The notes under the pieces are model-generated. The model was not told the DNA's origin. It did no database searches and saw only the letters and a program-made list of their open reading frames with translations. The position numbers and the translations under genes are program-made. Below, piece after piece: positions 1-11,214 of a stretch of DNA of 11,215 bases (position 1 is the first letter of the stretch; every line of letters starts with the position of its first letter). Origin of the DNA: Paraphysomonas bandaiensis (lineage: Eukaryota; Protista; Chrysophyceae); contig CBFFRP010000652.1 in assembly GCA_965644295.1 (NCBI GenBank), positions 1 to 11,215 on the forward strand, in the 5' to 3' direction.

Positions 1-384
1 AACAGATGATGGTGCGCCGGTAGGTGTGCTCGTTGGTATACCTGTTGGTACCGACGTCGGACCAGCTGTTGGAAGAGATGTGGGAGACGCAGTTGGAACG
101 CTAGATGGAACTGATGTGGGGAAACCACTTGGACGTGACGTTGGAAGAGACGACGGAGATGAAGATGGATAAGACGTCGGTAAACCAGTAGGTAAACTGG
201 ATGGAAGAGCAGACGGAATCGAAGTTGGGGTACTTGTTGGAAGACTTGTTGGTACACCAGTTGGGGATGATGTCGGAACTAATGTTGGGACCGCTGTAGG
301 TGCTGATGTCGGAATTGATGTTGGAAATCCAGTGGGGACTACAGACGGTACTGAACTTGGTACACTGGTTGGGAATGACGTCGT
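1..384 (-). repeat. P-[T/S]-x-x tetrapeptide linker (12-bp period), 128 aa visible, truncated by window edge
   Basis: Plus-strand NGG (Pro codon complement) recurs every 12 nt. Resembles the Pfam PT repeat (PF04886, XPTX tetrapeptide). Confidence 0.9.
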
Positions 385-3300
385 ATCGTCGGCACATACA
401 CCATCGACAGATCCATATGGACCAGGATGACAATCACCATTCACTATAGTAAACAACAACTGATCCTGTGCGCCACCAGACACACCGCAGAACTCCCAAG
501 TTACATCACCACTATCATCATCACATACACCTGTAGCACGGAAAACATATTCACCATCCTCCAAACATGAACCACATACTTCAATACTACCATTACCACC
601 CCCGCAAAAAGGCTCCGCATATGAGTGAAGAGTAGTCCTCGTGGAGTCCGTGATGTACCAAGCAGATTGAATGTAGTCAGGCAGAGAAACATTACCATAG
701 CTACCTTCACTCTCGGAACCAGTATGTAACACGCTATCAAGGAAATCGTTAAAGGTTATACCCCCACCACTCAAATCGTTACACCCTTCACATGCCTCAG
801 GGTATGACCATAGATTCTCCCACCATACCAAATCATATGTCTCCTCCGCGCGAGAATACTCAAAAGTCATACTCGTGTTGAATCCGCCATAATACTTATC
901 CATATACACACCGTCCTCAACTATCTGAACTGTCCAATGGATCTCCCATGGATAGGCCGGTACGTATGAATCACCGTTATCATCAACAGCATCCACTGTC
1001 ATATGATATAGCTGATCGATGTTCAAATCTGAAGGATAAATACAACCCGCTATAACCTCACAGTCACAATCCAATGTGAATTCTGTCAATGCACTATCCT
1101 CATCTCGGATTTGAACCCAATAACTGAAATTTGCTCCTGACCAACCGTCACCGAACTGGTCAAGCAAGGTTACAAAAAGACAAGTACCATTGACCGTATT
1201 ATTGACTATGGGATTGACTACATGATCCGTATACAGAGTACATTCGTCATAACACATCATATCATGATCAGGATTGGGGGTACCAAGCTCAGTTGGAACA
1301 GATGTAGGCTGACCACTTGGAACCCCTGTTGGAACGGCTGTCGGTGCAGATGTCGGTACAGAGGTAGGAACTGAAGTTGGAGACGATGTCGGAACAGAAG
1401 TAGGAACACCTGTTGGCAATGATGTCGGAACAGAGGTCGGGAACGCTGTTGGTAGTGATGTTGGGGAGGAAGATGGTATCGATGTCGGCACAGCAGATGG
1501 CACTGACGTTGGTGCACTTGATGGAACACTTGTAGGAGACGATGTTGGAACAGCTGTTGGTATTGATGTTGGCCTTCCTGTTGGTGTACTGCTAGGCTCG
1601 CCACTTGGAATGGAAGAAGGTTGCCCGCTGGGTTCCGACGACGGCAAACCCGTTGGCACACTGGTTGGAGATGACGTCGGAGTACCTGATGGTTGGGACG
1701 TAGGTTGTCCAGTAGGCTCAGATGTAGGAGATGATGTTGGAATAGACGTCGGTATCGCAGATGGAACCGATGTTGGAACAGATGATGGTGCGCCGGTAGG
1801 TGTGCTCGTTGGTATACCTGTTGGTACCGACGTCGGACCAGCTGTTGGAAGAGATGTGGGAGACGCAGTTGGAACGCTAGATGGAACTGATGTGGGGAAA
1901 CCACTTGGACGTGACGTTGGAAGAGACGACGGAGATGAAGATGGATAAGACGTCGGTAAACCAGTAGGTAAACTGGATGGAAGAGCAGACGGAATCGAAG
2001 TTGGGGTACTTGTTGGAAGACTTGTTGGTACACCAGTTGGGGATGATGTCGGAACTGATGTTGGGACCGCTGTAGGTGCTGATGTCGGAATTGATGTTGG
2101 AAATCCAGTGGGGACTACAGACGGTACTGAACTTGGTACACTGGTTGGGAATGACGTCGTATCGTCGGCACATACACCATCGACAGATCCATATGGACCA
2201 GGATGACAATCACCATTCACTATAGTAAACAACAACTGGTCCTGTGCGCCACCAGACACACCGCAGAACTCCCAAGTTACATCACCACTATCATCATCAC
2301 ATACACCTGTAGCACGGAAAACATATTCACCATCCTCCAAACATGAACCACATACTTCAATACTACCATTACCACCCCCGCAAAAAGGCTCCGCATATGA
2401 GTGAAGAGTAGTCCTCGTGGAGTCCGTGATGTACCAAGCAGATTGAATGTAGTCAGGCAGAGAAACATTACCATAGCTACCTTCACTCTCGGAACCAGTA
2501 TGTAACACGCTATCAAGGAAATCGTTAAAGGTTATACCCCCACCACTCAAATCGTTACACCCTTCACATGCCTCAGGGTATGACCATAGATTCTCCCACC
2601 ATACCAAATCATATGTCTCCTCCGCGCGAGAATACTCAAAAGTCATACTCGTGTTGAATCCGCCATAATACTTATCCATATACACACCGTCCTCAACTAT
2701 CTGAACTGTCCAATGGATCTCCCATGGATAGGCCGGTACGTATGAATCACCGTTATCATCAACAGCATCCACTGTCATATGATATAGCTGATCGATGTTC
2801 AAATCTGAAGGATAAATACAACCCGCTATAACCTCACAGTCACAATCCAATGTGAATTCTGTCAATGCACTATCCTCATCTCGGATTTGAACCCAATAAC
2901 TGAAATTTGCTCCTGACCAACCGTCACCGAACTGGTCAAGCAAGGTTACAAAAAGACAAGTACCATTGACCGTATTATTGACTATGGGATTGACTACATG
3001 ATCCGTATACAGAGTACATTCGTCATAACACATCATATCATGATCAGGATTGGGGGTACCAAGCTCAGTTGGAACAGATGTAGGCTGACCACTTGGAACC
3101 CCTGTTGGAACGGCTGTCGGTGCAGATGTCGGTACAGAGGTAGGAACTGAAGTTGGAGATGATGTCGGAACAGAAGTAGGAACACCTGTTGGCAATGATG
3201 TCGGAACAGAGGTCGGGAACGCTGTTGGTAGTGATGTTGGGGAGGAAGATGGTATCGATGTCGGCACAGCAGATGGCATTGACGTTGGTGCACTTGATGG

Positions 3301-6300
3301 AACACTTGTAGGAGACGATGTTGGAACAGCTGTTGGTATTGATGTTGGCCTTCCTGTTGGTGTACTGCTAGGCTCGCCACTTGGAATGGAAGAAGGTTGC
3401 CCGCTGGGTTCCGACGATGGCAAACCCGTTGGCACACTGGTTGGAGATGACGTCGGAGTACCTGATGGTTGGGACGTAGGTTGTCCAGTAGGCTCCAATG
3501 TAGGAGATGATGTTGGAATAGACGTCGGTATCGCAGATGGAACAGCTGTTGGTGTTGATGTTGGCCTTCCTGTTGGTGTACTGCTAGGCTCACCACTTGG
3601 AATGGAAGAAGGTTGTCCGCTGGGTTCCGACGATGGCAAACCCGTTGGCACACTGGTTGGAGATGACGTCGGAGTACCTGACGGTTCGGACGTAGGTTGT
3701 CCAGTAGGCTCAGATGTAGGAGATGATGTTGGAATAGACGTCGGTATCGCAGATGGAACAGCTGTTGGTATTGATGTTGGCCTTCCTGTTGGTGTACTGC
3801 TAGGCTCACCACTTGGAATGGAAGAAGGTTGCCCGCTGGGTTCCGACGACGGCAAACCCGTCGGTACACTGGTTGGAGATGACGTCGGAGTACCTGATGG
3901 TTGGGACGTAGGTTGTGCAGTAGGCTCAGATGTGGGAGAAGATGTAGGATCATTTGTAGGAATCGAAGATGGTGTCATGCTGGGCACTGATATCGGCGAA
4001 GCTGTGGGCACTGATGTCGGCATAGAAGTCGGTATCGTAGTGGGAATGTAAGAGGGACAACTGCTGGGTAAACTCGACGGAATTAAAGTTGGAGAAGCAG
4101 AAGGAATACTAGATGGGTTCGTTGACGGCATACTCGTGGGAAATGATGTAACGGCGTCGGAGCATACGTGTCCAATTGTTCCGTATGAGCCGGGATAACA
4201 TATACCATCTATGACAAAGATCTCGAATTCGGTCTGTGCTGATCCTATCTGCCCACAAAATTCCCACTCTACTTCATCACCGTCATCATCACACGCCCCA
4301 GTTGATCTGAAAACGTACTCTCCGTCAGGAAGACAGATATTACAACTACTACTATAACTTTCGTTGGAACCGCACAGCGGATCTGAAAAAGCGAACAATA
4401 TCTTGTGTGTGGAGTCACTTACGTACCACGACGACAAAAGATAGTCATTAGAGTCTGACATACCAAAGCTACCAGTACTACTTGAGCCTTCAACAACAAT
4501 CTCACCAATATAAGAATCAAAAGTAATTCCGTTGTCACTGAGTCCGTTACACCCCTCACATGCCTCAGGGTATGACCATAGGTTCTCCCACCATACCAAA
4601 TCATATGTCTCCTCCGCACGAGAATACTCAAAAGTCATACTCGTGTTGAATCCGCCATAATACTTATCCATATACACACCGTCCTCAACTATCTGAACTG
4701 TCCAATGGATCTCCCATGGATAGGCCGGTACGTATGAATCACCGTTATCATCAACAGCATCCACTGTCATATGATATAGCTGATCGATGTTTAAGTCTGA
4801 AGGATAAATACAACCCGCCATCGTTGTGCAGTTACAGTTCAGGCTATATACAACGGCTTGGGATTCTTCGCTGCGTATTTGAACCCAATAACTGAAATTT
4901 GCTCCAGGCCAACCGTCACCAAAGAGATCAAACATCGTCACATACAAACAAGAGGAATTAGTAACTTCTGACATCGTTGTACACTTATCGGAGCACAGAA
5001 TGTCGTCGCTCACATTCGGCGTGCCCAGCTCAGTTGGTACAGATGAAGGCAAACTACTCGGTTTTCCTGAAGGAGTAAATGTGGGTGCCGAAGTTGGAAT
5101 AGTGGTTGGAACAGAAGTAGGAACACAAGACGGGGCAGAACTTGGTTCACCACTTGGTACAGAGCTGGGATTGAAAGTCGGCATTGAAGTTGGAATCGCA
5201 GTTGGAGTAGATGTAGGAATCGAAGTAGGCACAGCACTGGGAACATAAGTCGGAATAGATGACGGTGAAGTTGTAGGAAGAGTAGTAGGAATTGAAGTGG
5301 GTATACCACTTGGTAAAGATGAGGGTATACTAGATGGAACACTGGTTGGAAAAGATGATGTACCACCATTACAGACTTGTTCTACAGGACCATATGCACC
5401 AGGATAGCAGACACCATCAATAATTATAAATTGTAACTCGTCCTGCTTGTCACCTGATACATCACAAAATTCCCACAACATGTTTTCTGGATCATGCGCA
5501 CCAGTCTGTCGGAAAATATAATCTCCATCCGGAAGGCATGACAAGCAGCTATCCGGAGCGTACATGTGGTCTACGCCACAGAAAGGTTTGCCATATGCTA
5601 CAACAGAGGTCAAGTCGGAAGCATTAGTAACATACCACGTGGTGCGAGTGTAATCCGAATTTCCCCCAGAACTAAAATCTTCAGCATCACCGTCATAGAT
5701 ACTTTTCACATAGTTGGCATAAGTAGCATATGTGCTGTTATCGTTCGACCCACAGGTGTCTACGCAATTCACGCAGGGTTCTGGCAGAACCCATAAATTC
5801 TGCCACCACAAAATGTCGTACGTATCTTCCATTCTGCTGTATTCGAACACCATGCTCGTGTTGTAACCACCGTAATACTTTTCCTGAAAAACACCATCAA
5901 CAACTATTTGAACAGTCCAAGTAATTTCCCAAAAATACTCCGGCACGATTGCATTTCCATTTTCATCAAATGCTTCAACAGTAAAATGGTACAACTGATC
6001 GATATTTATGTCTGAAGGACGCACACACCCCATCAGTTTCGAGCAGTTGCAGTTTACAGTTTCGCGAATTATGTTTGAGTCATCATCACGAACTTGTACC
6101 CAGTAAAACAAGCCGGCATCATCACCCCAACCATCACCAAATTGATCTGCAATTGTAACATAAAGACATGTCTCGTTACCAACAGGCTCATAATCACAGG
6201 TCAAGTTAGAAGTGATATTCACGGACGGCAAAGCTGTCGGAAGAAAAGATGGCACAGATGTTGGAGTAGATGTAGGAATCGAAGTAGGCACAGCACTGGG

Positions 6301-9300
6301 AACATAAGTCGGAATAGATGACGGTGAAGTTGTAGGAAGAGTAGTAGGAATTGAAGTGGGTATACCACTTGGTAAAGATGAGGGTATACTAGATGGAACA
6401 CTGGTTGGAAAAGATGACGTACCACCATTACAGACTTGTTCTACAGGACCATATGCACCAGGATAGCAGACACCATCAATAATTATAAATTGTAACTCGT
6501 CCTGCTTGTCACCTGATACATCACAAAATTCCCACAACATGTTTTCTGGATCATGCGCACCAGTCTGTCGGAAAATATAATCTCCATCCGGAAGGCATGA
6601 CAAGCAGCTATCCGGAGCGTACATGTGGTCTACGCCACAGAAAGGTTTGCCATATGCTACAACAGAGGTCAAGTCGGAAGCATTAGTAACATACCACGTG
6701 GTGCGAGTGTAATCCGAATTTCCCCCAGAACTAAAATCTTCAGCATCACCGTCATAGATACTTTTCACATAGTTGGCATAAGTAGCATATGTGCTGTTAT
6801 CGTTCGACCCACAGGTGTCTACGCAATTCACGCAGGGTTCTGGCAGAACCCATAAATTCTGCCACCACAAAATGTCGTACGTATCTTCCATTCTGCTGTA
6901 TTCGAACACCATGCTCGTGTTGTAACCACCGTAATACTTTTCCTGAAAAACACCATCAACAACTACTTGAACAGTCCAAGTAATTTCCCAAAAATACTCC
7001 GGCACGATTGCATTTCCATTTTCATCAAATGCTTCAACAGTAAAATGGTACAACTGATCGATATTTATGTCTGAAGGACGCACACACCCCATCAGTTTCG
7101 AGCAGTTGCAGTTTACAGTTTCGCGAATTATGTTTGAGTCATCATCACGAACTTGTACCCAGTAAAACAAGCCGGCATCATCACCCCAACCATCACCAAA
7201 TTGATCTGCAATTGTAACATAAAGACATGTCTCGTTACCAACAGGCTCATAATCACAGGTCAAGTTAGAAGTGATATTCACGGACGGCAAAGCTGTCGGA
7301 AGAAAAGATGGCACAGATGTTGGAGTAGATGTAGGAATCGAAGTAGGCACAGCACTGGGAACATAAGTCGGAATATAAGAAGGATTCGCCGAAGGTATAG
7401 TCGTCGGAAAACTGGATGGAACACTACTAGGAGAAGTACTAGGAACCCCAGTCGGTCCAAACGTAGGCAACGAAGAAGGCAACAGACTAGGTCGAGAAGA
7501 TGGTGGAGAACTAGGAAATGATGTTGGAGTAGCAGAAGGAATACTAGATGGGTTCGTTGACGGCATACTCGTGGGAAATGATGTAACGGCGTCGGAGCAT
7601 ACGTGTCCAATTGTTCCGTATGAGCCGGGATAACATATACCATCTATGACAAAGATCTCGAATTCGGTCTGTGCTGATCCTATCTGCCCACAAAATTCCC
7701 ACTCTACTTCATCACCGTCATCATCACACGCCCCAGTTGATCTGAAAACGTACTCTCCGTCAGGAAGACAGATATTACAACTACTACTATAACTTTCGTT
7801 GGAACCGCACAGCGGATCTGAAAAAGCGAACAATATCTTGTGTGTGGAGTCACTTACGTACCACGACGACAAAAGATAGTCATTAGAATCTAACATACCA
7901 AAGCTACCAGTACTACTTGAGCCTTCAACAATAATCTCACCAATATAAGAATCAAAAGTAATTCCGTTGTCACTGAGTCCGTTACACCCCTCACATGCCT
8001 CAGGGTATGACCATAGATTCTCCCACCATACCAAATCATATGTCTCCTCCGCGCGAGAATACTCAAAAGTCATACTCGTGTTGAATCCGCCATAATACTT
8101 ATCCATATACACACCGTCCTCAACTATCTGAACTGTCCAATGGATCTCCCATGGATAGGCCGGTACGTATGAATCACCGTTATCATCAACAGCATCCACT
8201 GTCATATGATATAGCTGATCGATGTTCAAATCTGAAGGATAAATACAACCCGCTATAACCTCACAGTCACAATCCAATGTGAATTCTGTCAATGCACTAT
8301 GCTCATCTCGGATTTGAACCCAATAACTGAAATTTGCTCCTGACCAACCGTCACCGAACTGGTCAAGCAAGGTTACAAAAAGACAAGTACCATTGACCGT
8401 ATTATTGACTATGGGATTGACTACATGATCCGTATACAGAGTACATTCGTCATAACACATCATATCATGATCAGGATTGGGGGTACCAAGCTCAGTTGGA
8501 ACAGATGTAGGCTGACCACTTGGAACCCCTGTTGGAACGGCTGTCGGTGCAGATGTCGGTACAGAGGTGGGAACTGAAGTTGGAGACGATGTCGGAACAG
8601 AAGTAGGAACACCTGTTGGCAATGATGTCGGAACAGAGGTCGGGAACGCTGTTGGTAGTGATGTTGGGGAGGAAGATGGTATCGATGTCGGCACAGCAGA
8701 TGGCATTGACGTTGGTGCACTTGATGGAACACTTGTAGGAGACGATGTTGGAACAGCTGTTGGTATTGATGTTGGCCTTCCTGTTGGTGTACTGCTAGGC
8801 TCGCCACTTGGAATGGAAGAAGGTTGCCCGCTGGGTTCCGACGACGGCAAACCCGTTGGCACACTGGTTGGAGATGACGTCGGAGTACCTGATGGTTGGG
8901 ACGTAGGTTGTCCAGTAGGCTCAGATGTAGGAGATGATGTTGGAATAGACGTCGGTATCGCAGATGGAACAGCTGTTGGTATTGATGTTGGCCTTCCTGT
9001 TGGTGCACTGCTAGGCTCACCACTTGGAATGGAAGAAGGTTGCCCGCTGGGTTCCGACGACGGCAAACCCGTTGGCACACTGGATGGAGATGACGTCGGA
9101 GAACCTGATGGTTGGGACGTAGGTTGTCCAGTAGGCTCAGATGTGGGAGATGATGTCGGTATAGGTGTTGGCAGTGAACTCGGAAGTGTTGTTGGTGTAG
9201 ACGAAGGCAAAGGCGTCGGAACAACAGAAGGGACTGCGGTGGGACATGAAGATGGCAGAGAGGATGGAAAAGTGGATGGTAGAGCAGACGGAATCGAAGT

Positions 9301-11214
9301 TGGGGTACTTGTTGGAAGACTTGTTGGTACACCAGTTGGAGATGATGTCGGAACTAATGTTGGGACCGCTGTAGGTGCTGATGTCGGAATTGATGTTGGA
9401 AATCCAGTGGGGACTACAGACGGTACTGAACTTGGTACACTGGTTGGGAATGACGTCGTATCGTCGGCACATACACCATCGACAGATCCATATGGACCAG
9501 GATGACAATCACCATTCACTATAGTAAACAACAACTGATCCTGTGCGCCACCAGACACACCGCAGAACTCCCAAGTTACATCACCACTATCATCATCACA
9601 TACACCTGTAGCACGGAAAACATATTCACCATCCTCCAAACATGAACCACATACTTCAATACTACCATTACCACCCCCGCAAAAAGGCTCCGCATATGAG
9701 TGAAGAGTAGTCCTCGTGGAGTCCGTGATGTACCAAGCAGATTGAATGTAGTCAGGCAGAGAAACATTACCATAGCTACCTTCACTCTCGGAACCAGTAT
9801 GTAACACGCTATCAAGGAAATCGTTAAAGGTTATACCCCCACCACTCAAATCGTTACACCCTTCACATGCCTCAGGGTATGACCATAGATTCTCCCACCA
9901 TACCAAATCATATGTCTCCTCCGCGCGAGAATACTCAAAAGTCATACTCGTGTTGAATCCGCCATAATACTTATCCATATACACACCGTCCTCAACTATC
10001 TGAACTGTCCAATGGATCTCCCATGGATAGGCCGGTACGTATGAATCACCGTTATCATCAACAGCATCCACTGTCATATGATATAGCTGATCGATGTTCA
10101 AATCTGAAGGATAAATACAACCCGCTATAACCTCACAGTCACAATCCAATGTGAATTCTGTCAATGCACTATCCTCATCTCGGATTTGAACCCAATAACT
10201 GAAATTTGCTCCTGACCAACCGTCACCGAACTGGTCAAGCAAGGTTACAAAAAGACAAGTACCATTGACCGTATTATTGACTATGGGATTGACTACATGA
10301 TCCGTATACAGAGTACATTCGTCATAACACATCATATCATGATCAGGATTGGGGGTACCAAGCTCAGTTGGAACAGATGTAGGCTGACCACTTGGAACCC
10401 CTGTTGGAACGGCTGTCGGTGCAGATGTCGGTACAGAGGTGGGAACTGAAGTTGGAGACGATGTCGGAACAGAAGTAGGAACACCTGTTGGCAATGATGT
10501 CGGAACAGAGGTCGGGAACGCTGTTGGTAGTGATGTTGGGGAGGAAGATGGTATCGATGTCGGCACAGCAGATGGCATTGACGTTGGTGCACTTGATGGA
10601 ACACTTGTAGGAGACGATGTTGGAACAGCTGTTGGTATTGATGTTGGCCTTCCTGTTGGTGTACTGCTAGGCTCGCCACTTGGAATGGAAGAAGGTTGCC
10701 CGCTGGGTTCCGACGACGGCAAACCCGTTGGCACACTGGTTGGAGATAATGTTGGAATAGACGTCGGTATCGCAGATGGAACAGCTGTTGGTATTGATGT
10801 TGGCCTTCCTGTTGGTGTACTGCTAGGCTCACCACTTGGAATAGAAGAAGGTTGCCCGCTGGGTTCCGACGACGGCAAACTCGTCGGCACACTGGTTGGA
10901 GATGACGTCGGAGTACCTGACGGTTGGGACGTAGGTTGTCCAGTAGGCTCAGATGTAGGAGATGATGTTGGAATAGACGTCGGTATCGCAGATGGAACAG
11001 CTGTTGGTATTGGTGTTGGCCTTCCTGTTGGTGTACTGCTAGGCTCGCCACTTGGAATGGAAGAAGGTTGCCCGCTGGGTTCCGACGACGGCAAACCCGT
11101 TGGCACACTGGTTGGAGGTGACGTCGGAGTACCTGATGGTTGGGACGTAGGTTGTCCAGTAGGCTCAGATGTAGGAGATGATGTTGGAATAGACGTCGGT
11201 ATCGCAGATGGAAC
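1..11214 (-). CDS. Giant (>3738 aa, partial at both ends) modular protein with 7 Cys-rich globular modules separated by Pro/Thr/Ser (PT-repeat, mucin-like) linkers; probable secreted or cell-surface glycoprotein
   Basis: No TTA/CTA/TCA found in plus-strand frame-1 triplets, so no minus-strand stop. Same frame at both ends (11214: VPSAIPTSIPTSSPTSEP...; position 1: ...PTSTPTGAPSSV). All repeat offsets (1776, 1059, 3435, 7203, 9075, 216, 156) are multiples of 3. Diverged module variants conserve amino-acid motifs in this frame while synonymous positions change. No intron is needed. Confidence 0.95.
385..1284 (-). other. Globular module, variant A (copy A1, 300 aa)
   Basis: Translation: GTPNPDHDMMCYDECTLYTDHVVNPIVNNTVNGTCLFVTLLDQFGDGWSGANFSYWVQIRDEDSALTEFTLDCDCEVIAGCIYPSDLNIDQLYHMTVDAVDDNGDSYVPAYPWEIHWTVQIVEDGVYMDKYYGGFNTSMTFEYSRAEETYDLVWWENLWSYPEACEGCNDLSGGGITFNDFLDSVLHTGSESEGSYGNVSLPDYIQSAWYITDSTRTTLHSYAEPFCGGGNGSIEVCGSCLEDGEYVFRATGVCDDDSGDVTWEFCGVSGGAQDQLLFTIVNGDCHPGPYGSVDGVCADD. 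Contains 15 Cys. Boundaries approximate. Confidence 0.9.
1285..2160 (-). repeat. P-[T/S]-x-x linker, 292 aa, containing one 216-bp subunit (1549-1764)
   Basis: For example PTSEPTGQPTSQPSGTPTSSPTSVPTGLPSSEPSGQPSSIPSGEPSSTPTGR; Pro at every 4th residue. Confidence 0.9.
2161..3060 (-). other. Globular module, variant A (copy A2)
   Basis: Near-identical to 385-1284 at offset 1776. One synonymous difference noticed (463 a vs 2239 g; Asp codon). Confidence 0.9.
3061..4152 (-). repeat. P-[T/S]-x-x linker, 364 aa, with ~3 tandem 216-bp subunits
   Basis: aacagctgttggt(a/g)ttgatgttggcc starts at 3325, 3541 and 3757 (third copy partial). Confidence 0.9.
4153..5025 (-). other. Globular module, variant B (291 aa): unique N-terminus, A-like middle, B-type C-terminal half
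   Basis: GTPNVSDDILCSDKCTTMSEVTNSSCLYVTMFDLFGDGWPGANFSYWVQIRSEESQAVVYSLNCNCTTMAGCIYPSDLNIDQLYH...WWENLWSYPEACEGCNGLSDNGITFDSYIGEIVVEGSSSTGSFGMSDSNDYLLSSWYVSDSTHKILFAFSDPLCGSNESYSSSCNICLPDGEYVFRSTGACDDDGDEVEWEFCGQIGSAQTEFEIFVIDGICYPGSYGTIGHVCSDA. Contains 15 Cys that align with A. Confidence 0.9.
5026..5361 (-). repeat. P-[T/S]-x-x linker, 112 aa
   Basis: 12-bp Pro periodicity; no 216-bp subunit. Confidence 0.88.
5362..6222 (-). other. Globular module, variant C (copy C1, 287 aa)
   Basis: VNITSNLTCDYEPVGNETCLYVTIADQFGDGWGDDAGLFYWVQVRDDDSNIIRETVNCNCSKLMGCVRPSDINIDQLYHFTVEAFDENGNAIVPEYFWEITWTVQIVVDGVFQEKYYGGYNTSMVFEYSRMEDTYDILWWQNLWVLPEPCVNCVDTCGSNDNSTYATYANYVKSIYDGDAEDFSSGGNSDYTRTTWYVTNASDLTSVVAYGKPFCGVDHMYAPDSCLSCLPDGDYIFRQTGAHDPENMLWEFCDVSGDKQDELQFIIIDGVCYPGAYGPVEQVCNGG. 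Contains 14 Cys and is clearly homologous to A and B. Confidence 0.9.
6223..6420 (-). repeat. P-[T/S]-x-x linker, 66 aa (shortest)
   Basis: 12-bp Pro periodicity between the two C modules. Confidence 0.88.
6421..7281 (-). other. Globular module, variant C (copy C2)
   Basis: Near-identical to 5362-6222 at offset 1059. One Ile/Val difference noticed (caactatttg vs caactacttg). Confidence 0.9.
7282..7587 (-). repeat. P-[T/S]-x-x linker, 102 aa
   Basis: 12-bp Pro periodicity. Confidence 0.88.
7588..8487 (-). other. Globular module, chimeric A(N-half)/B(C-half), 300 aa
   Basis: 7588-~7990 matches B (4153-~4555, offset 3435). ~8017-8487 matches A (offset 7203), including A-specific alleles ccatagattc and ccgcgcgaga. 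Confidence 0.88.
8488..9459 (-). repeat. P-[T/S]-x-x linker, 324 aa, with ~2 tandem 216-bp subunits
   Basis: Subunit starts at 8752 and 8968 (second copy partial), followed by a unique stretch at ~9160-9280. Confidence 0.9.
9460..10359 (-). other. Globular module, variant A (copy A3)
   Basis: Near-identical to 385-1284 at offset 9075. Confidence 0.9.
10360..11214 (-). repeat. P-[T/S]-x-x linker, 285 aa visible, with three 216-bp-family subunits, one internally deleted by 60 bp
   Basis: Subunit starts at 10624, 10780 (spacing 156) and 10996 (spacing 216). Confidence 0.9.

Follow-up and report, generated by a model that had tools for sequence, protein, structure and literature searches.

Giant surface glycoproteins in which tracts rich in proline, threonine and serine (PTS) alternate with folded domains are a known layout. 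The adhesive trail proteins CaTrailin4, Ca5609 and CaFAP1 of the diatom Craspedostauros australis range from 0.9 to >1 MDa, carry a signal peptide and are hard to assemble (bioRxiv 10.1101/2023.03.06.531300). For stramenopile FG-GAP proteins, the accessible parts of two papers (Pirsonia, PMC13524835; brown algae, 10.1101/2024.02.19.579948) describe FG-GAP repeats together with EGF, IPT, cadherin and integrin-alpha domains, not with the module described below. Here, we report the analysis of an 11,215-nucleotide stretch from Paraphysomonas bandaiensis (contig CBFFRP010000652.1, assembly GCA_965644295.1), called the window in what follows. The window is the entire contig (C652) and belongs to a eukaryotic assembly of 62.6 Mb. 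It is an internal piece of a real gene, most probably for a giant surface protein. We read it, with a probability of roughly 0.58, as the middle of a gene for a giant single-pass type I surface glycoprotein that may serve the cell coat as a multivalent adhesin; taken by itself, the surface-glycoprotein part of this reading appears highly probable.

On the minus strand, the frame that runs from position 11214 to position 1 contains no stop in 3738 codons, and the remaining five frames contain 108–281 stops each. The chance of such an open frame is ~1e-80 given the base composition, and ~1e-19 if only the ~900 non-repeated codons are counted. The first-pass annotation of this DNA had proposed exactly this frame as a hidden, intron-free gene that was missing from its list of open reading frames (ORFs). 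Our analysis confirmed the open frame, and neither an in-frame stop nor a frameshift occurs in the 11.2 kb. The frame is missing only because the list contains no frames that extend past the source sequence, and this one is open at both contig ends. The term "intron-free" holds solely in the sense of an unbroken frame whose modules align to their relatives without insertions. The same annotation saw no signal peptide or membrane anchor, in agreement with our finding that the window protein (3738 amino acids, aa) has no hydrophobic segment.

The product consists of eight linkers (1659 aa) that alternate with seven acidic modules (2079 aa). The seven modules had been recognized before with a module/linker split of 2065/1673 aa, and the difference reflects boundary placement only. 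The features, in the order of translation, are as follows.

1..11214, minus strand: open frame of 3738 codons, 0 stops, open at both contig ends
10366..11214, minus strand: linker 1, P-[T/S]-x-x repeats with 72-aa (216-bp) super-repeats
9457..10365, minus strand: module 1 (type A), 303 aa; same protein sequence as modules 6 and 7, and 98% identical to the type-A copies of contig C655
9880..10010, minus strand: ~120-nt N-lobe tract, 97–100% identical among modules 1, 2, 5, 6, 7 and C655, 93–98% identical to contig C275
8494..9456, minus strand: linker 2, 321 aa, 70% Pro/Thr/Ser
7585..8493, minus strand: module 2, mosaic of a type-A N-lobe and a module-5-type C-lobe
7282..7584, minus strand: linker 3, 101 aa
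6421..7281, minus strand: module 3, diverged type, ~51% identical to type A
6223..6420, minus strand: linker 4, 66 aa
5362..6222, minus strand: module 4, which duplicates module 3 in tandem and recently (99.6% aa identity)
5029..5361, minus strand: linker 5, 111 aa
4150..5028, minus strand: module 5, 65% identical to type A
3067..4149, minus strand: linker 6, 361 aa; PF04886 match of 155 bits
2158..3066, minus strand: module 6 (type A)
1291..2157, minus strand: linker 7, 289 aa; PF04886 match of 128 bits
382..1290, minus strand: module 7 (type A), in a 1776-bp tandem duplication (99.5%); AlphaFold2 model with predicted local distance difference test (pLDDT) 81 and predicted template modelling score (pTM) 0.83
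796..1188, minus strand: N-lobe of module 7, predicted beta-sandwich with an invariant DxFGDGW loop and a WE motif
388..789, minus strand: C-lobe of module 7, predicted beta-sandwich homologous to the N-lobe
1..381, minus strand: linker 8, runs off the contig end

The linkers are 69–71% Pro+Thr+Ser and nearly uncharged. They are built from P-[T/S]-x-x tetrapeptides, so strictly that 305 of 316 proline-to-proline spacings equal four, and two of them match the Pfam PT repeat (PF04886) far above its gathering cut-off of 26.2 bits. The modules measure 287–303 aa, each with 14–15 Cys, 9 Trp and 5–7 N-glycosylation sequons. The protein as a whole has an isoelectric point (pI) of ~4.05 and contains only 19 Lys.

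Comparison of the module copies established that they are under purifying selection. Their nucleotide differences fall preferentially on the third positions of minus-frame codons, and synonymous divergence (dS) exceeds nonsynonymous divergence (dN) at every distance with enough countable changes. The dS/dN values are 0.055/0.010 for module 1 against the copy C655_8, 0.168/0.053 for modules 2 and 5, and 1.0/0.28 for modules 1 and 5, with further pairs at 0.138/0.038 and 0.58/0.22; dN/dS is 0.2–0.4. An antisense artefact was rejected, since the plus-strand frames contain 118–185 stops and it is in the minus frame that third positions show an excess of substitutions. A pseudogene was rejected as unlikely, given the absence of stops and a dN/dS well below 1.

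The copies also bear traces of recent exchange. Modules 1, 6 and 7 do not differ in protein sequence, modules 3 and 4 form a recent pair, and the internal duplications are near-perfect (99.3–99.6%). In module 2, the DNA of the N-lobe is 98–100% identical to module 1 and that of the C-lobe 96–100% identical to module 5. Unequal crossing-over and gene conversion are the established mechanism of tandem-array evolution. The array may have grown and been homogenized in this way, including swaps of single lobes, and the tract at 9880..10010 reads as a gene-conversion tract.

To what fold the module belongs is suggested by prediction and alignment. Its sequence has no significant match in Pfam, NCBIfam or the PDB sequences, and 31 modules searched against Pfam gave no match at E ≤ 0.1. 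AlphaFold2, run with a 31-row alignment, returned a nearly all-beta module with two beta-sandwich lobes (pLDDT 81, pTM 0.83). An hhalign comparison over 93 columns shows the two lobes to be homologous (probability 84.5, E 7e-6). In one conserved family, with members of ~580 aa, the C-lobe still opens with DxxGDGW, a second copy of the N-lobe motif. On this combined evidence, the module is a tandem of two homologous predicted beta-sandwiches that arose by internal duplication. Since the lobes are separable in some relatives, where they lie up to 786 residues apart or occur alone in threes and fours, the true unit is the ~115-aa sandwich. Across 100 relatives of 25–60% identity, the N-lobe residues D10, D14, W16 and E82 are conserved at 99–100%, and W81 and G101 at 97–98%. 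Judged by strand order, the loop that follows strand 1 would meet the beginning of the E82 strand at one end of the sandwich, an arrangement that would fit a Ca2+ or sugar site. The motif may resemble the "DSYGDGW" domains of secreted Bacteroidota proteins; a scan of prokaryotic genomes with the N-lobe, which detects close relatives only, found none.

Structure comparison gave for the C-lobe a best match to the CnaB2/SpyCatcher structure 4mli (Z 6.1, root-mean-square deviation 2.8, 77 residues aligned; Foldseek E 0.22), which is not significant against the guide value of Z 8 for this tool. The best Z for the whole module was 4.9. Searches of the ESM Atlas yielded only unnamed clusters (scores 0.78–0.80), with a TM-score of at most 0.36 by model.

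The module recurs in at least ten open frames of 2000–7450 codons in the same genome, and weaker single copies occur on ~15–20 further contigs. Our comparison of paralogues was confined to the loci named below; the paralogous loci C543, C109, C644, C169 and C360 lie outside it. The giant gene on C335 (7450-codon frame, 15 modules) has an N-terminal signal-like segment and one transmembrane (TM) segment near its end. C217 likewise combines a signal-like N-terminus with one C-terminal TM segment, and C36 has a TM segment; both additionally carry leucine-rich repeats (LRRs) and another unnamed domain. Signal and TM segments were called by hydropathy and by eye. The complete paralogues thus have a predicted type I topology, which supports the earlier proposal of an extracellular protein.

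Downstream of the C335 giant gene by 4.8 kb and on the same strand lies a gene for a 1018-aa single-module receptor (C335:115786-118851) with a signal, FG-GAP repeats, the module and a TM segment. This gene is 99.6% identical to a Paraphysomonas transcript (MMETSP1103, taxid 36769), which bears out the stramenopile origin that the first-pass annotation had suspected. The window itself holds no neighbouring gene and is tied to this host by module kinship and by its GC content at third codon positions (0.34, vs 0.32–0.39). The host of the window is therefore probably a chrysophyte of the genus Paraphysomonas. The other named relatives of the module all belong to Paraphysomonas (taxids 36770 and 37642) or to Mallomonas annulata; the exceptions are fragments that carry the labels Symbiodinium or Amoebophrya. 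The latter are the close relatives P0001, P0008, P0254 and P0259, attributed to Symbiodinium microadriaticum (NCBI CAE7546477.1) and Amoebophrya AT5.2 (EukProt); these labels probably reflect chrysophyte contamination of those assemblies.

Several further features of these loci were recorded. The second unnamed domain (~330 aa) is repeated in C36 (87492-93000), stands N-terminally in C217 (145137-146300) and is also present in P0009 and P0036; it has no Pfam match and by eye resembles tandem H-type-lectin-like sandwiches. Intact-looking ORFs for polyproteins of ~1500 aa, which by eye resemble copia-type retrotransposons, flank the C36 giant gene on either side (C36:80692-85155 and 104101-108882), and another lies just past the C217 gene (C217:162970-167571). 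On C655, a 2604-codon open frame (59665-67476, minus strand) stands head to head with the module gene at a distance of 3.6 kb. By eye, it begins like a C-type lectin, continues with PT repeats and ends like an LRR protein; its opposite strand is open for 2244 codons.

The missing ends of the window gene point to two other contigs. Near-identical DNA to both window ends occurs in this genome only in the window itself and in C655. The gene on C655 starts with a signal-like peptide, contains nine modules in 3884 aa and is cut off by the contig end within a type-A module; over 1400 bp, its units match those of the window at 98% identity. C275 begins at its contig end inside an array; ~3100 aa further on, it closes with a distinctive last module that is followed by a TM helix and a short tail. 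Compared with the window modules, those of C275 have reached synonymous saturation, but a 120-nt tract is 98.3% identical (95% at third positions) among the window, C655 and C275, vs 66–75% for the best corresponding tract in C335, C217 or C36. Since recent exchange is confined to these three contigs and their missing ends are complementary, they can be read as one gene. We consider it very likely that C655 joins the window and rather likely that C275 does; the order C655 (3884 aa), window (3738 aa), C275 (~3100 aa) is the most likely one. The joined gene would probably encode at least 10,700 aa (~1.1 MDa) with at least 24 modules. At the contig end of C275 (C275:115499-116531) lies a copy of the 2154-bp repeat of the gene itself, in which ~20 gap positions fall within 1.3 kb; these gaps are sequencing errors of a raw contig end rather than marks of a pseudogene. 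At giant repeat genes of this kind, assemblies break up, and the resulting orphan contigs are passed over by ORF callers.

A profile search returned 646 module relatives (representatives at 50% clustering). Among the 150 best-scoring relatives, most of the long proteins are single-pass and have one copy of the module in the ectodomain; FG-GAP repeats often precede it, or REJ, fn3, LRR or kelch-like repeats accompany it. In the ~580-aa family, the module forms the N-terminal part of the ectodomain. The plan of the giant protein is conserved in other organisms, because two relatives share it: in P0009 (5977 aa), a signal precedes six modules joined by PT linkers and a TM segment follows them, and the metagenomic P0020, with four modules and a TM segment, is collinear with the end of C275 (42% identity over 1312 columns, TM segment included). 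Judged by these architectures, the module is an undescribed domain family that is widespread in chrysophyte-type membrane proteins. With ~650 clusters at 50% identity, this family is absent from Pfam, and it links giant repeat proteins to short FG-GAP receptors. The giant proteins P0037, P0039, P0054 and P0059 (2700–6050 aa) have a single copy of the module. Pfam recognizes a REJ domain in two of these proteins, and several have more than one TM segment; these features suggest polycystin-like receptors. A module array with a period of 1133 bp was found on the ENA metagenome contig L028 (9142-14500), with the same ~101-nt GT-AG intron in every copy. Gene callers therefore split this array into separate 344-aa genes, and the intron-free state is not universal in the module family.

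How might such a protein work? In the reading that we prefer, the chain would be exported and anchored by a single C-terminal TM helix. O-glycosylation would turn the P-[T/S]-x-x linkers into stiff rods, and the ~3400 linker residues, at 0.25–0.3 nm each, would together with the modules give an estimated reach of ~1 micrometre. The disulfide-locked modules could then serve as repeated low-affinity binding heads, with the invariant Asp/Asp/Glu/Trp cluster of the N-lobe as the candidate site, possibly for Ca2+-assisted sugar binding. Since many heads on one tether give avidity, the protein would be a multivalent adhesin of the cell coat that contacts prey, surfaces or other coat molecules.

Several observations weigh against this reading. 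The window gene is known from genomic sequence, and the closest database protein reaches no more than ~62% identity with it. Neither join is backed by an overlap between contigs. The tail of C655 differs from the window copies at 9–11 of 441 nt and from its own copies at none, and C655 alternates type A with a B-type module that is absent from the window; because of these two observations, the window may be an allele or a close paralogue. As to function, ligand binding by the module heads is a prediction, and the spatial clustering of the acidic residues derives from strand order. Structural support for the N-lobe is weak (best Z 4.9 to the fungal lectin CML1, and Z 4.6 to TerD), and Foldseek returned nothing at E ≤ 0.001 for the module or the C-lobe.

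An alternative that we consider unlikely is that the modules are inert stalk units, like the Ig-like or CnaB repeats of bacterial adhesins, in a protective glycocalyx or spacer protein of which only the N-terminal modules would bind, if any. This idea draws on the CnaB2 stalk domain as the best fold match of the C-lobe (below the guide value, as said), on the place of the module in FG-GAP proteins, where it occupies the position that leg domains have in integrin-alpha, and on the wholesale homogenization of the copies. However, the invariant Asp, Asp, Glu and Trp and the Gly-rich loop in 100 relatives exceed the needs of a spacer, the module is N-terminal in the ectodomain of the ~580-aa family, and length is already supplied by the PT linkers.

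Paraphysomonas is silica-scaled, and the filament might instead be a matrix of the scale coat that glues the scales together and to the plasma membrane, with modules that bind scale glycans or are cross-linked by Ca2+. The named module relatives come from scaled forms among the chrysophytes, in three transcriptomes of Paraphysomonas and in Mallomonas annulata, and the protein is very acidic (pI ~4.05); both would suit such a role. High-molecular-mass glycoproteins belong to the scale case of Mallomonas; we found no paper on them. With no Lys-rich or polyamine-type silica-binding sequence in the window protein (19 Lys in 3738 aa) and the module mostly in receptor-like architectures, we regard this role as rather improbable.

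That the window is an allele, a recent paralogue, or a mis-assembled or unexpressed repeat outside the C655/C275 gene would accord with an orphan 11-kb contig known from genomic sequence, its near-perfect internal duplications and a module order unlike the A/B alternation of C655, but seems most doubtful, since 11.2 kb without stops or frameshifts (vs ~20 gap positions in 1.3 kb at the raw end of C275) contain module types found nowhere else in the genome and under purifying selection, and the type of protein encoded would not differ for an allele or paralogue, which would change only the size estimate.

The preferred reading, that of a tethered adhesin, can be extended to a bolder proposal, which we offer as speculation. 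The module may be a new family of Ca2+-assisted, glycan-binding beta-sandwich pairs and the main ectodomain unit of a large, undescribed family of chrysophyte receptors; in Paraphysomonas, it would have been amplified into a single-exon filament of >1 MDa and ~1 micrometre that either tethers the silica scales or reaches past the scale coat to capture prey, with lobe swaps by gene conversion that vary the binding heads. If true, this would give a first molecular entry point to how chrysophyte grazers hold their scales or catch prey. Among marine grazers, Paraphysomonas and its relatives are abundant, and the window protein is a concrete candidate for their coat or contact layer. Our literature search found no description of the window protein or of the module, and no paper naming proteins of the cell coat, scale attachment or prey contact in Paraphysomonas or its relatives. 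The 300-aa module is compact and soluble-looking, has an invariant motif and should be expressible and assayable.

Finally, we compared the protein with known systems. The Pfam scan used here covered the N-terminus and array of C655, most of C275 (including the juxtamembrane region) and the window, and PT alone matched. Like the gel-forming mucins MUC2, MUC5AC and MUC5B, the window protein has PTS tracts (linkers with 69–71% P+T+S) broken by disulfide-rich domains. Unlike them, it has a strict four-residue Pro periodicity, a predicted membrane anchor in its family and no sequence relation. Neither VWD nor cystine knot was matched in the scanned C655, C275 and window sequences; CysD (Mucin2_WxxW) had no Pfam match in the 31 modules, WxxW does not occur in the window, C655 or C275, and mucin CysD is absent among the 50 best fold matches. 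Hence, of the earlier proposal of a mucin-like but sequence-unrelated protein, the analogy stands, and the gel-forming layout gives way to a probable membrane-tethered one without VWD, CysD or cystine knot. With the membrane-tethered mucins MUC1, MUC4 and MUC16, the family shares a predicted type I topology, a giant P/T/S-rich ectodomain and, in C275 and C335, a short tail. It differs by globular modules along the whole stalk, and SEA, NIDO, AMOP and VWD had no Pfam match in C275, juxtamembrane region included.

The diatom trail proteins are also of stramenopile origin and have PTS-rich tracts interspaced with Cys-containing unnamed repeats (bioRxiv 10.1101/2023.03.06.531300). They are, however, secreted into trails, and the Trailins have CAA domains and spacer repeats with six Cys, whereas the window family has a 295-aa two-lobe bead with 14–15 Cys and a predicted transmembrane anchor. 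CAA (PF20597) had no Pfam match in the modules or in the scanned C655, C275 and window, and the GDPH tetrapeptide is absent. Bacterial repeat adhesins (FbaB CnaB2, RrgA, SiiE) are comparable as giant repetitive surface proteins with a weak beta-sandwich similarity (lobes at Z 4.2 and 6.1), but the module would have disulfides instead of isopeptide bonds, and no Lys column is conserved at ≥60% in either lobe alignment. With stramenopile FG-GAP integrin-like proteins, the link is the commonest context of the module among its top matches, namely FG-GAP repeats, module and TM segment. FG-GAP itself has no Pfam match in the window, C655 or C275, and the module relatives, which have FG-GAP_2, gave no match to integrin-alpha leg domains. 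The protein thus belongs neither to the tethered mucins nor to the diatom trail proteins, isopeptide adhesins or integrins. Mucins and diatom trail proteins anticipate this architecture, so that the finding is moderately surprising: the giant PTS/modular layout of a surface glycoprotein was known, and the contig join, the internal duplication of the lobes and the receptor origin of the module are new.

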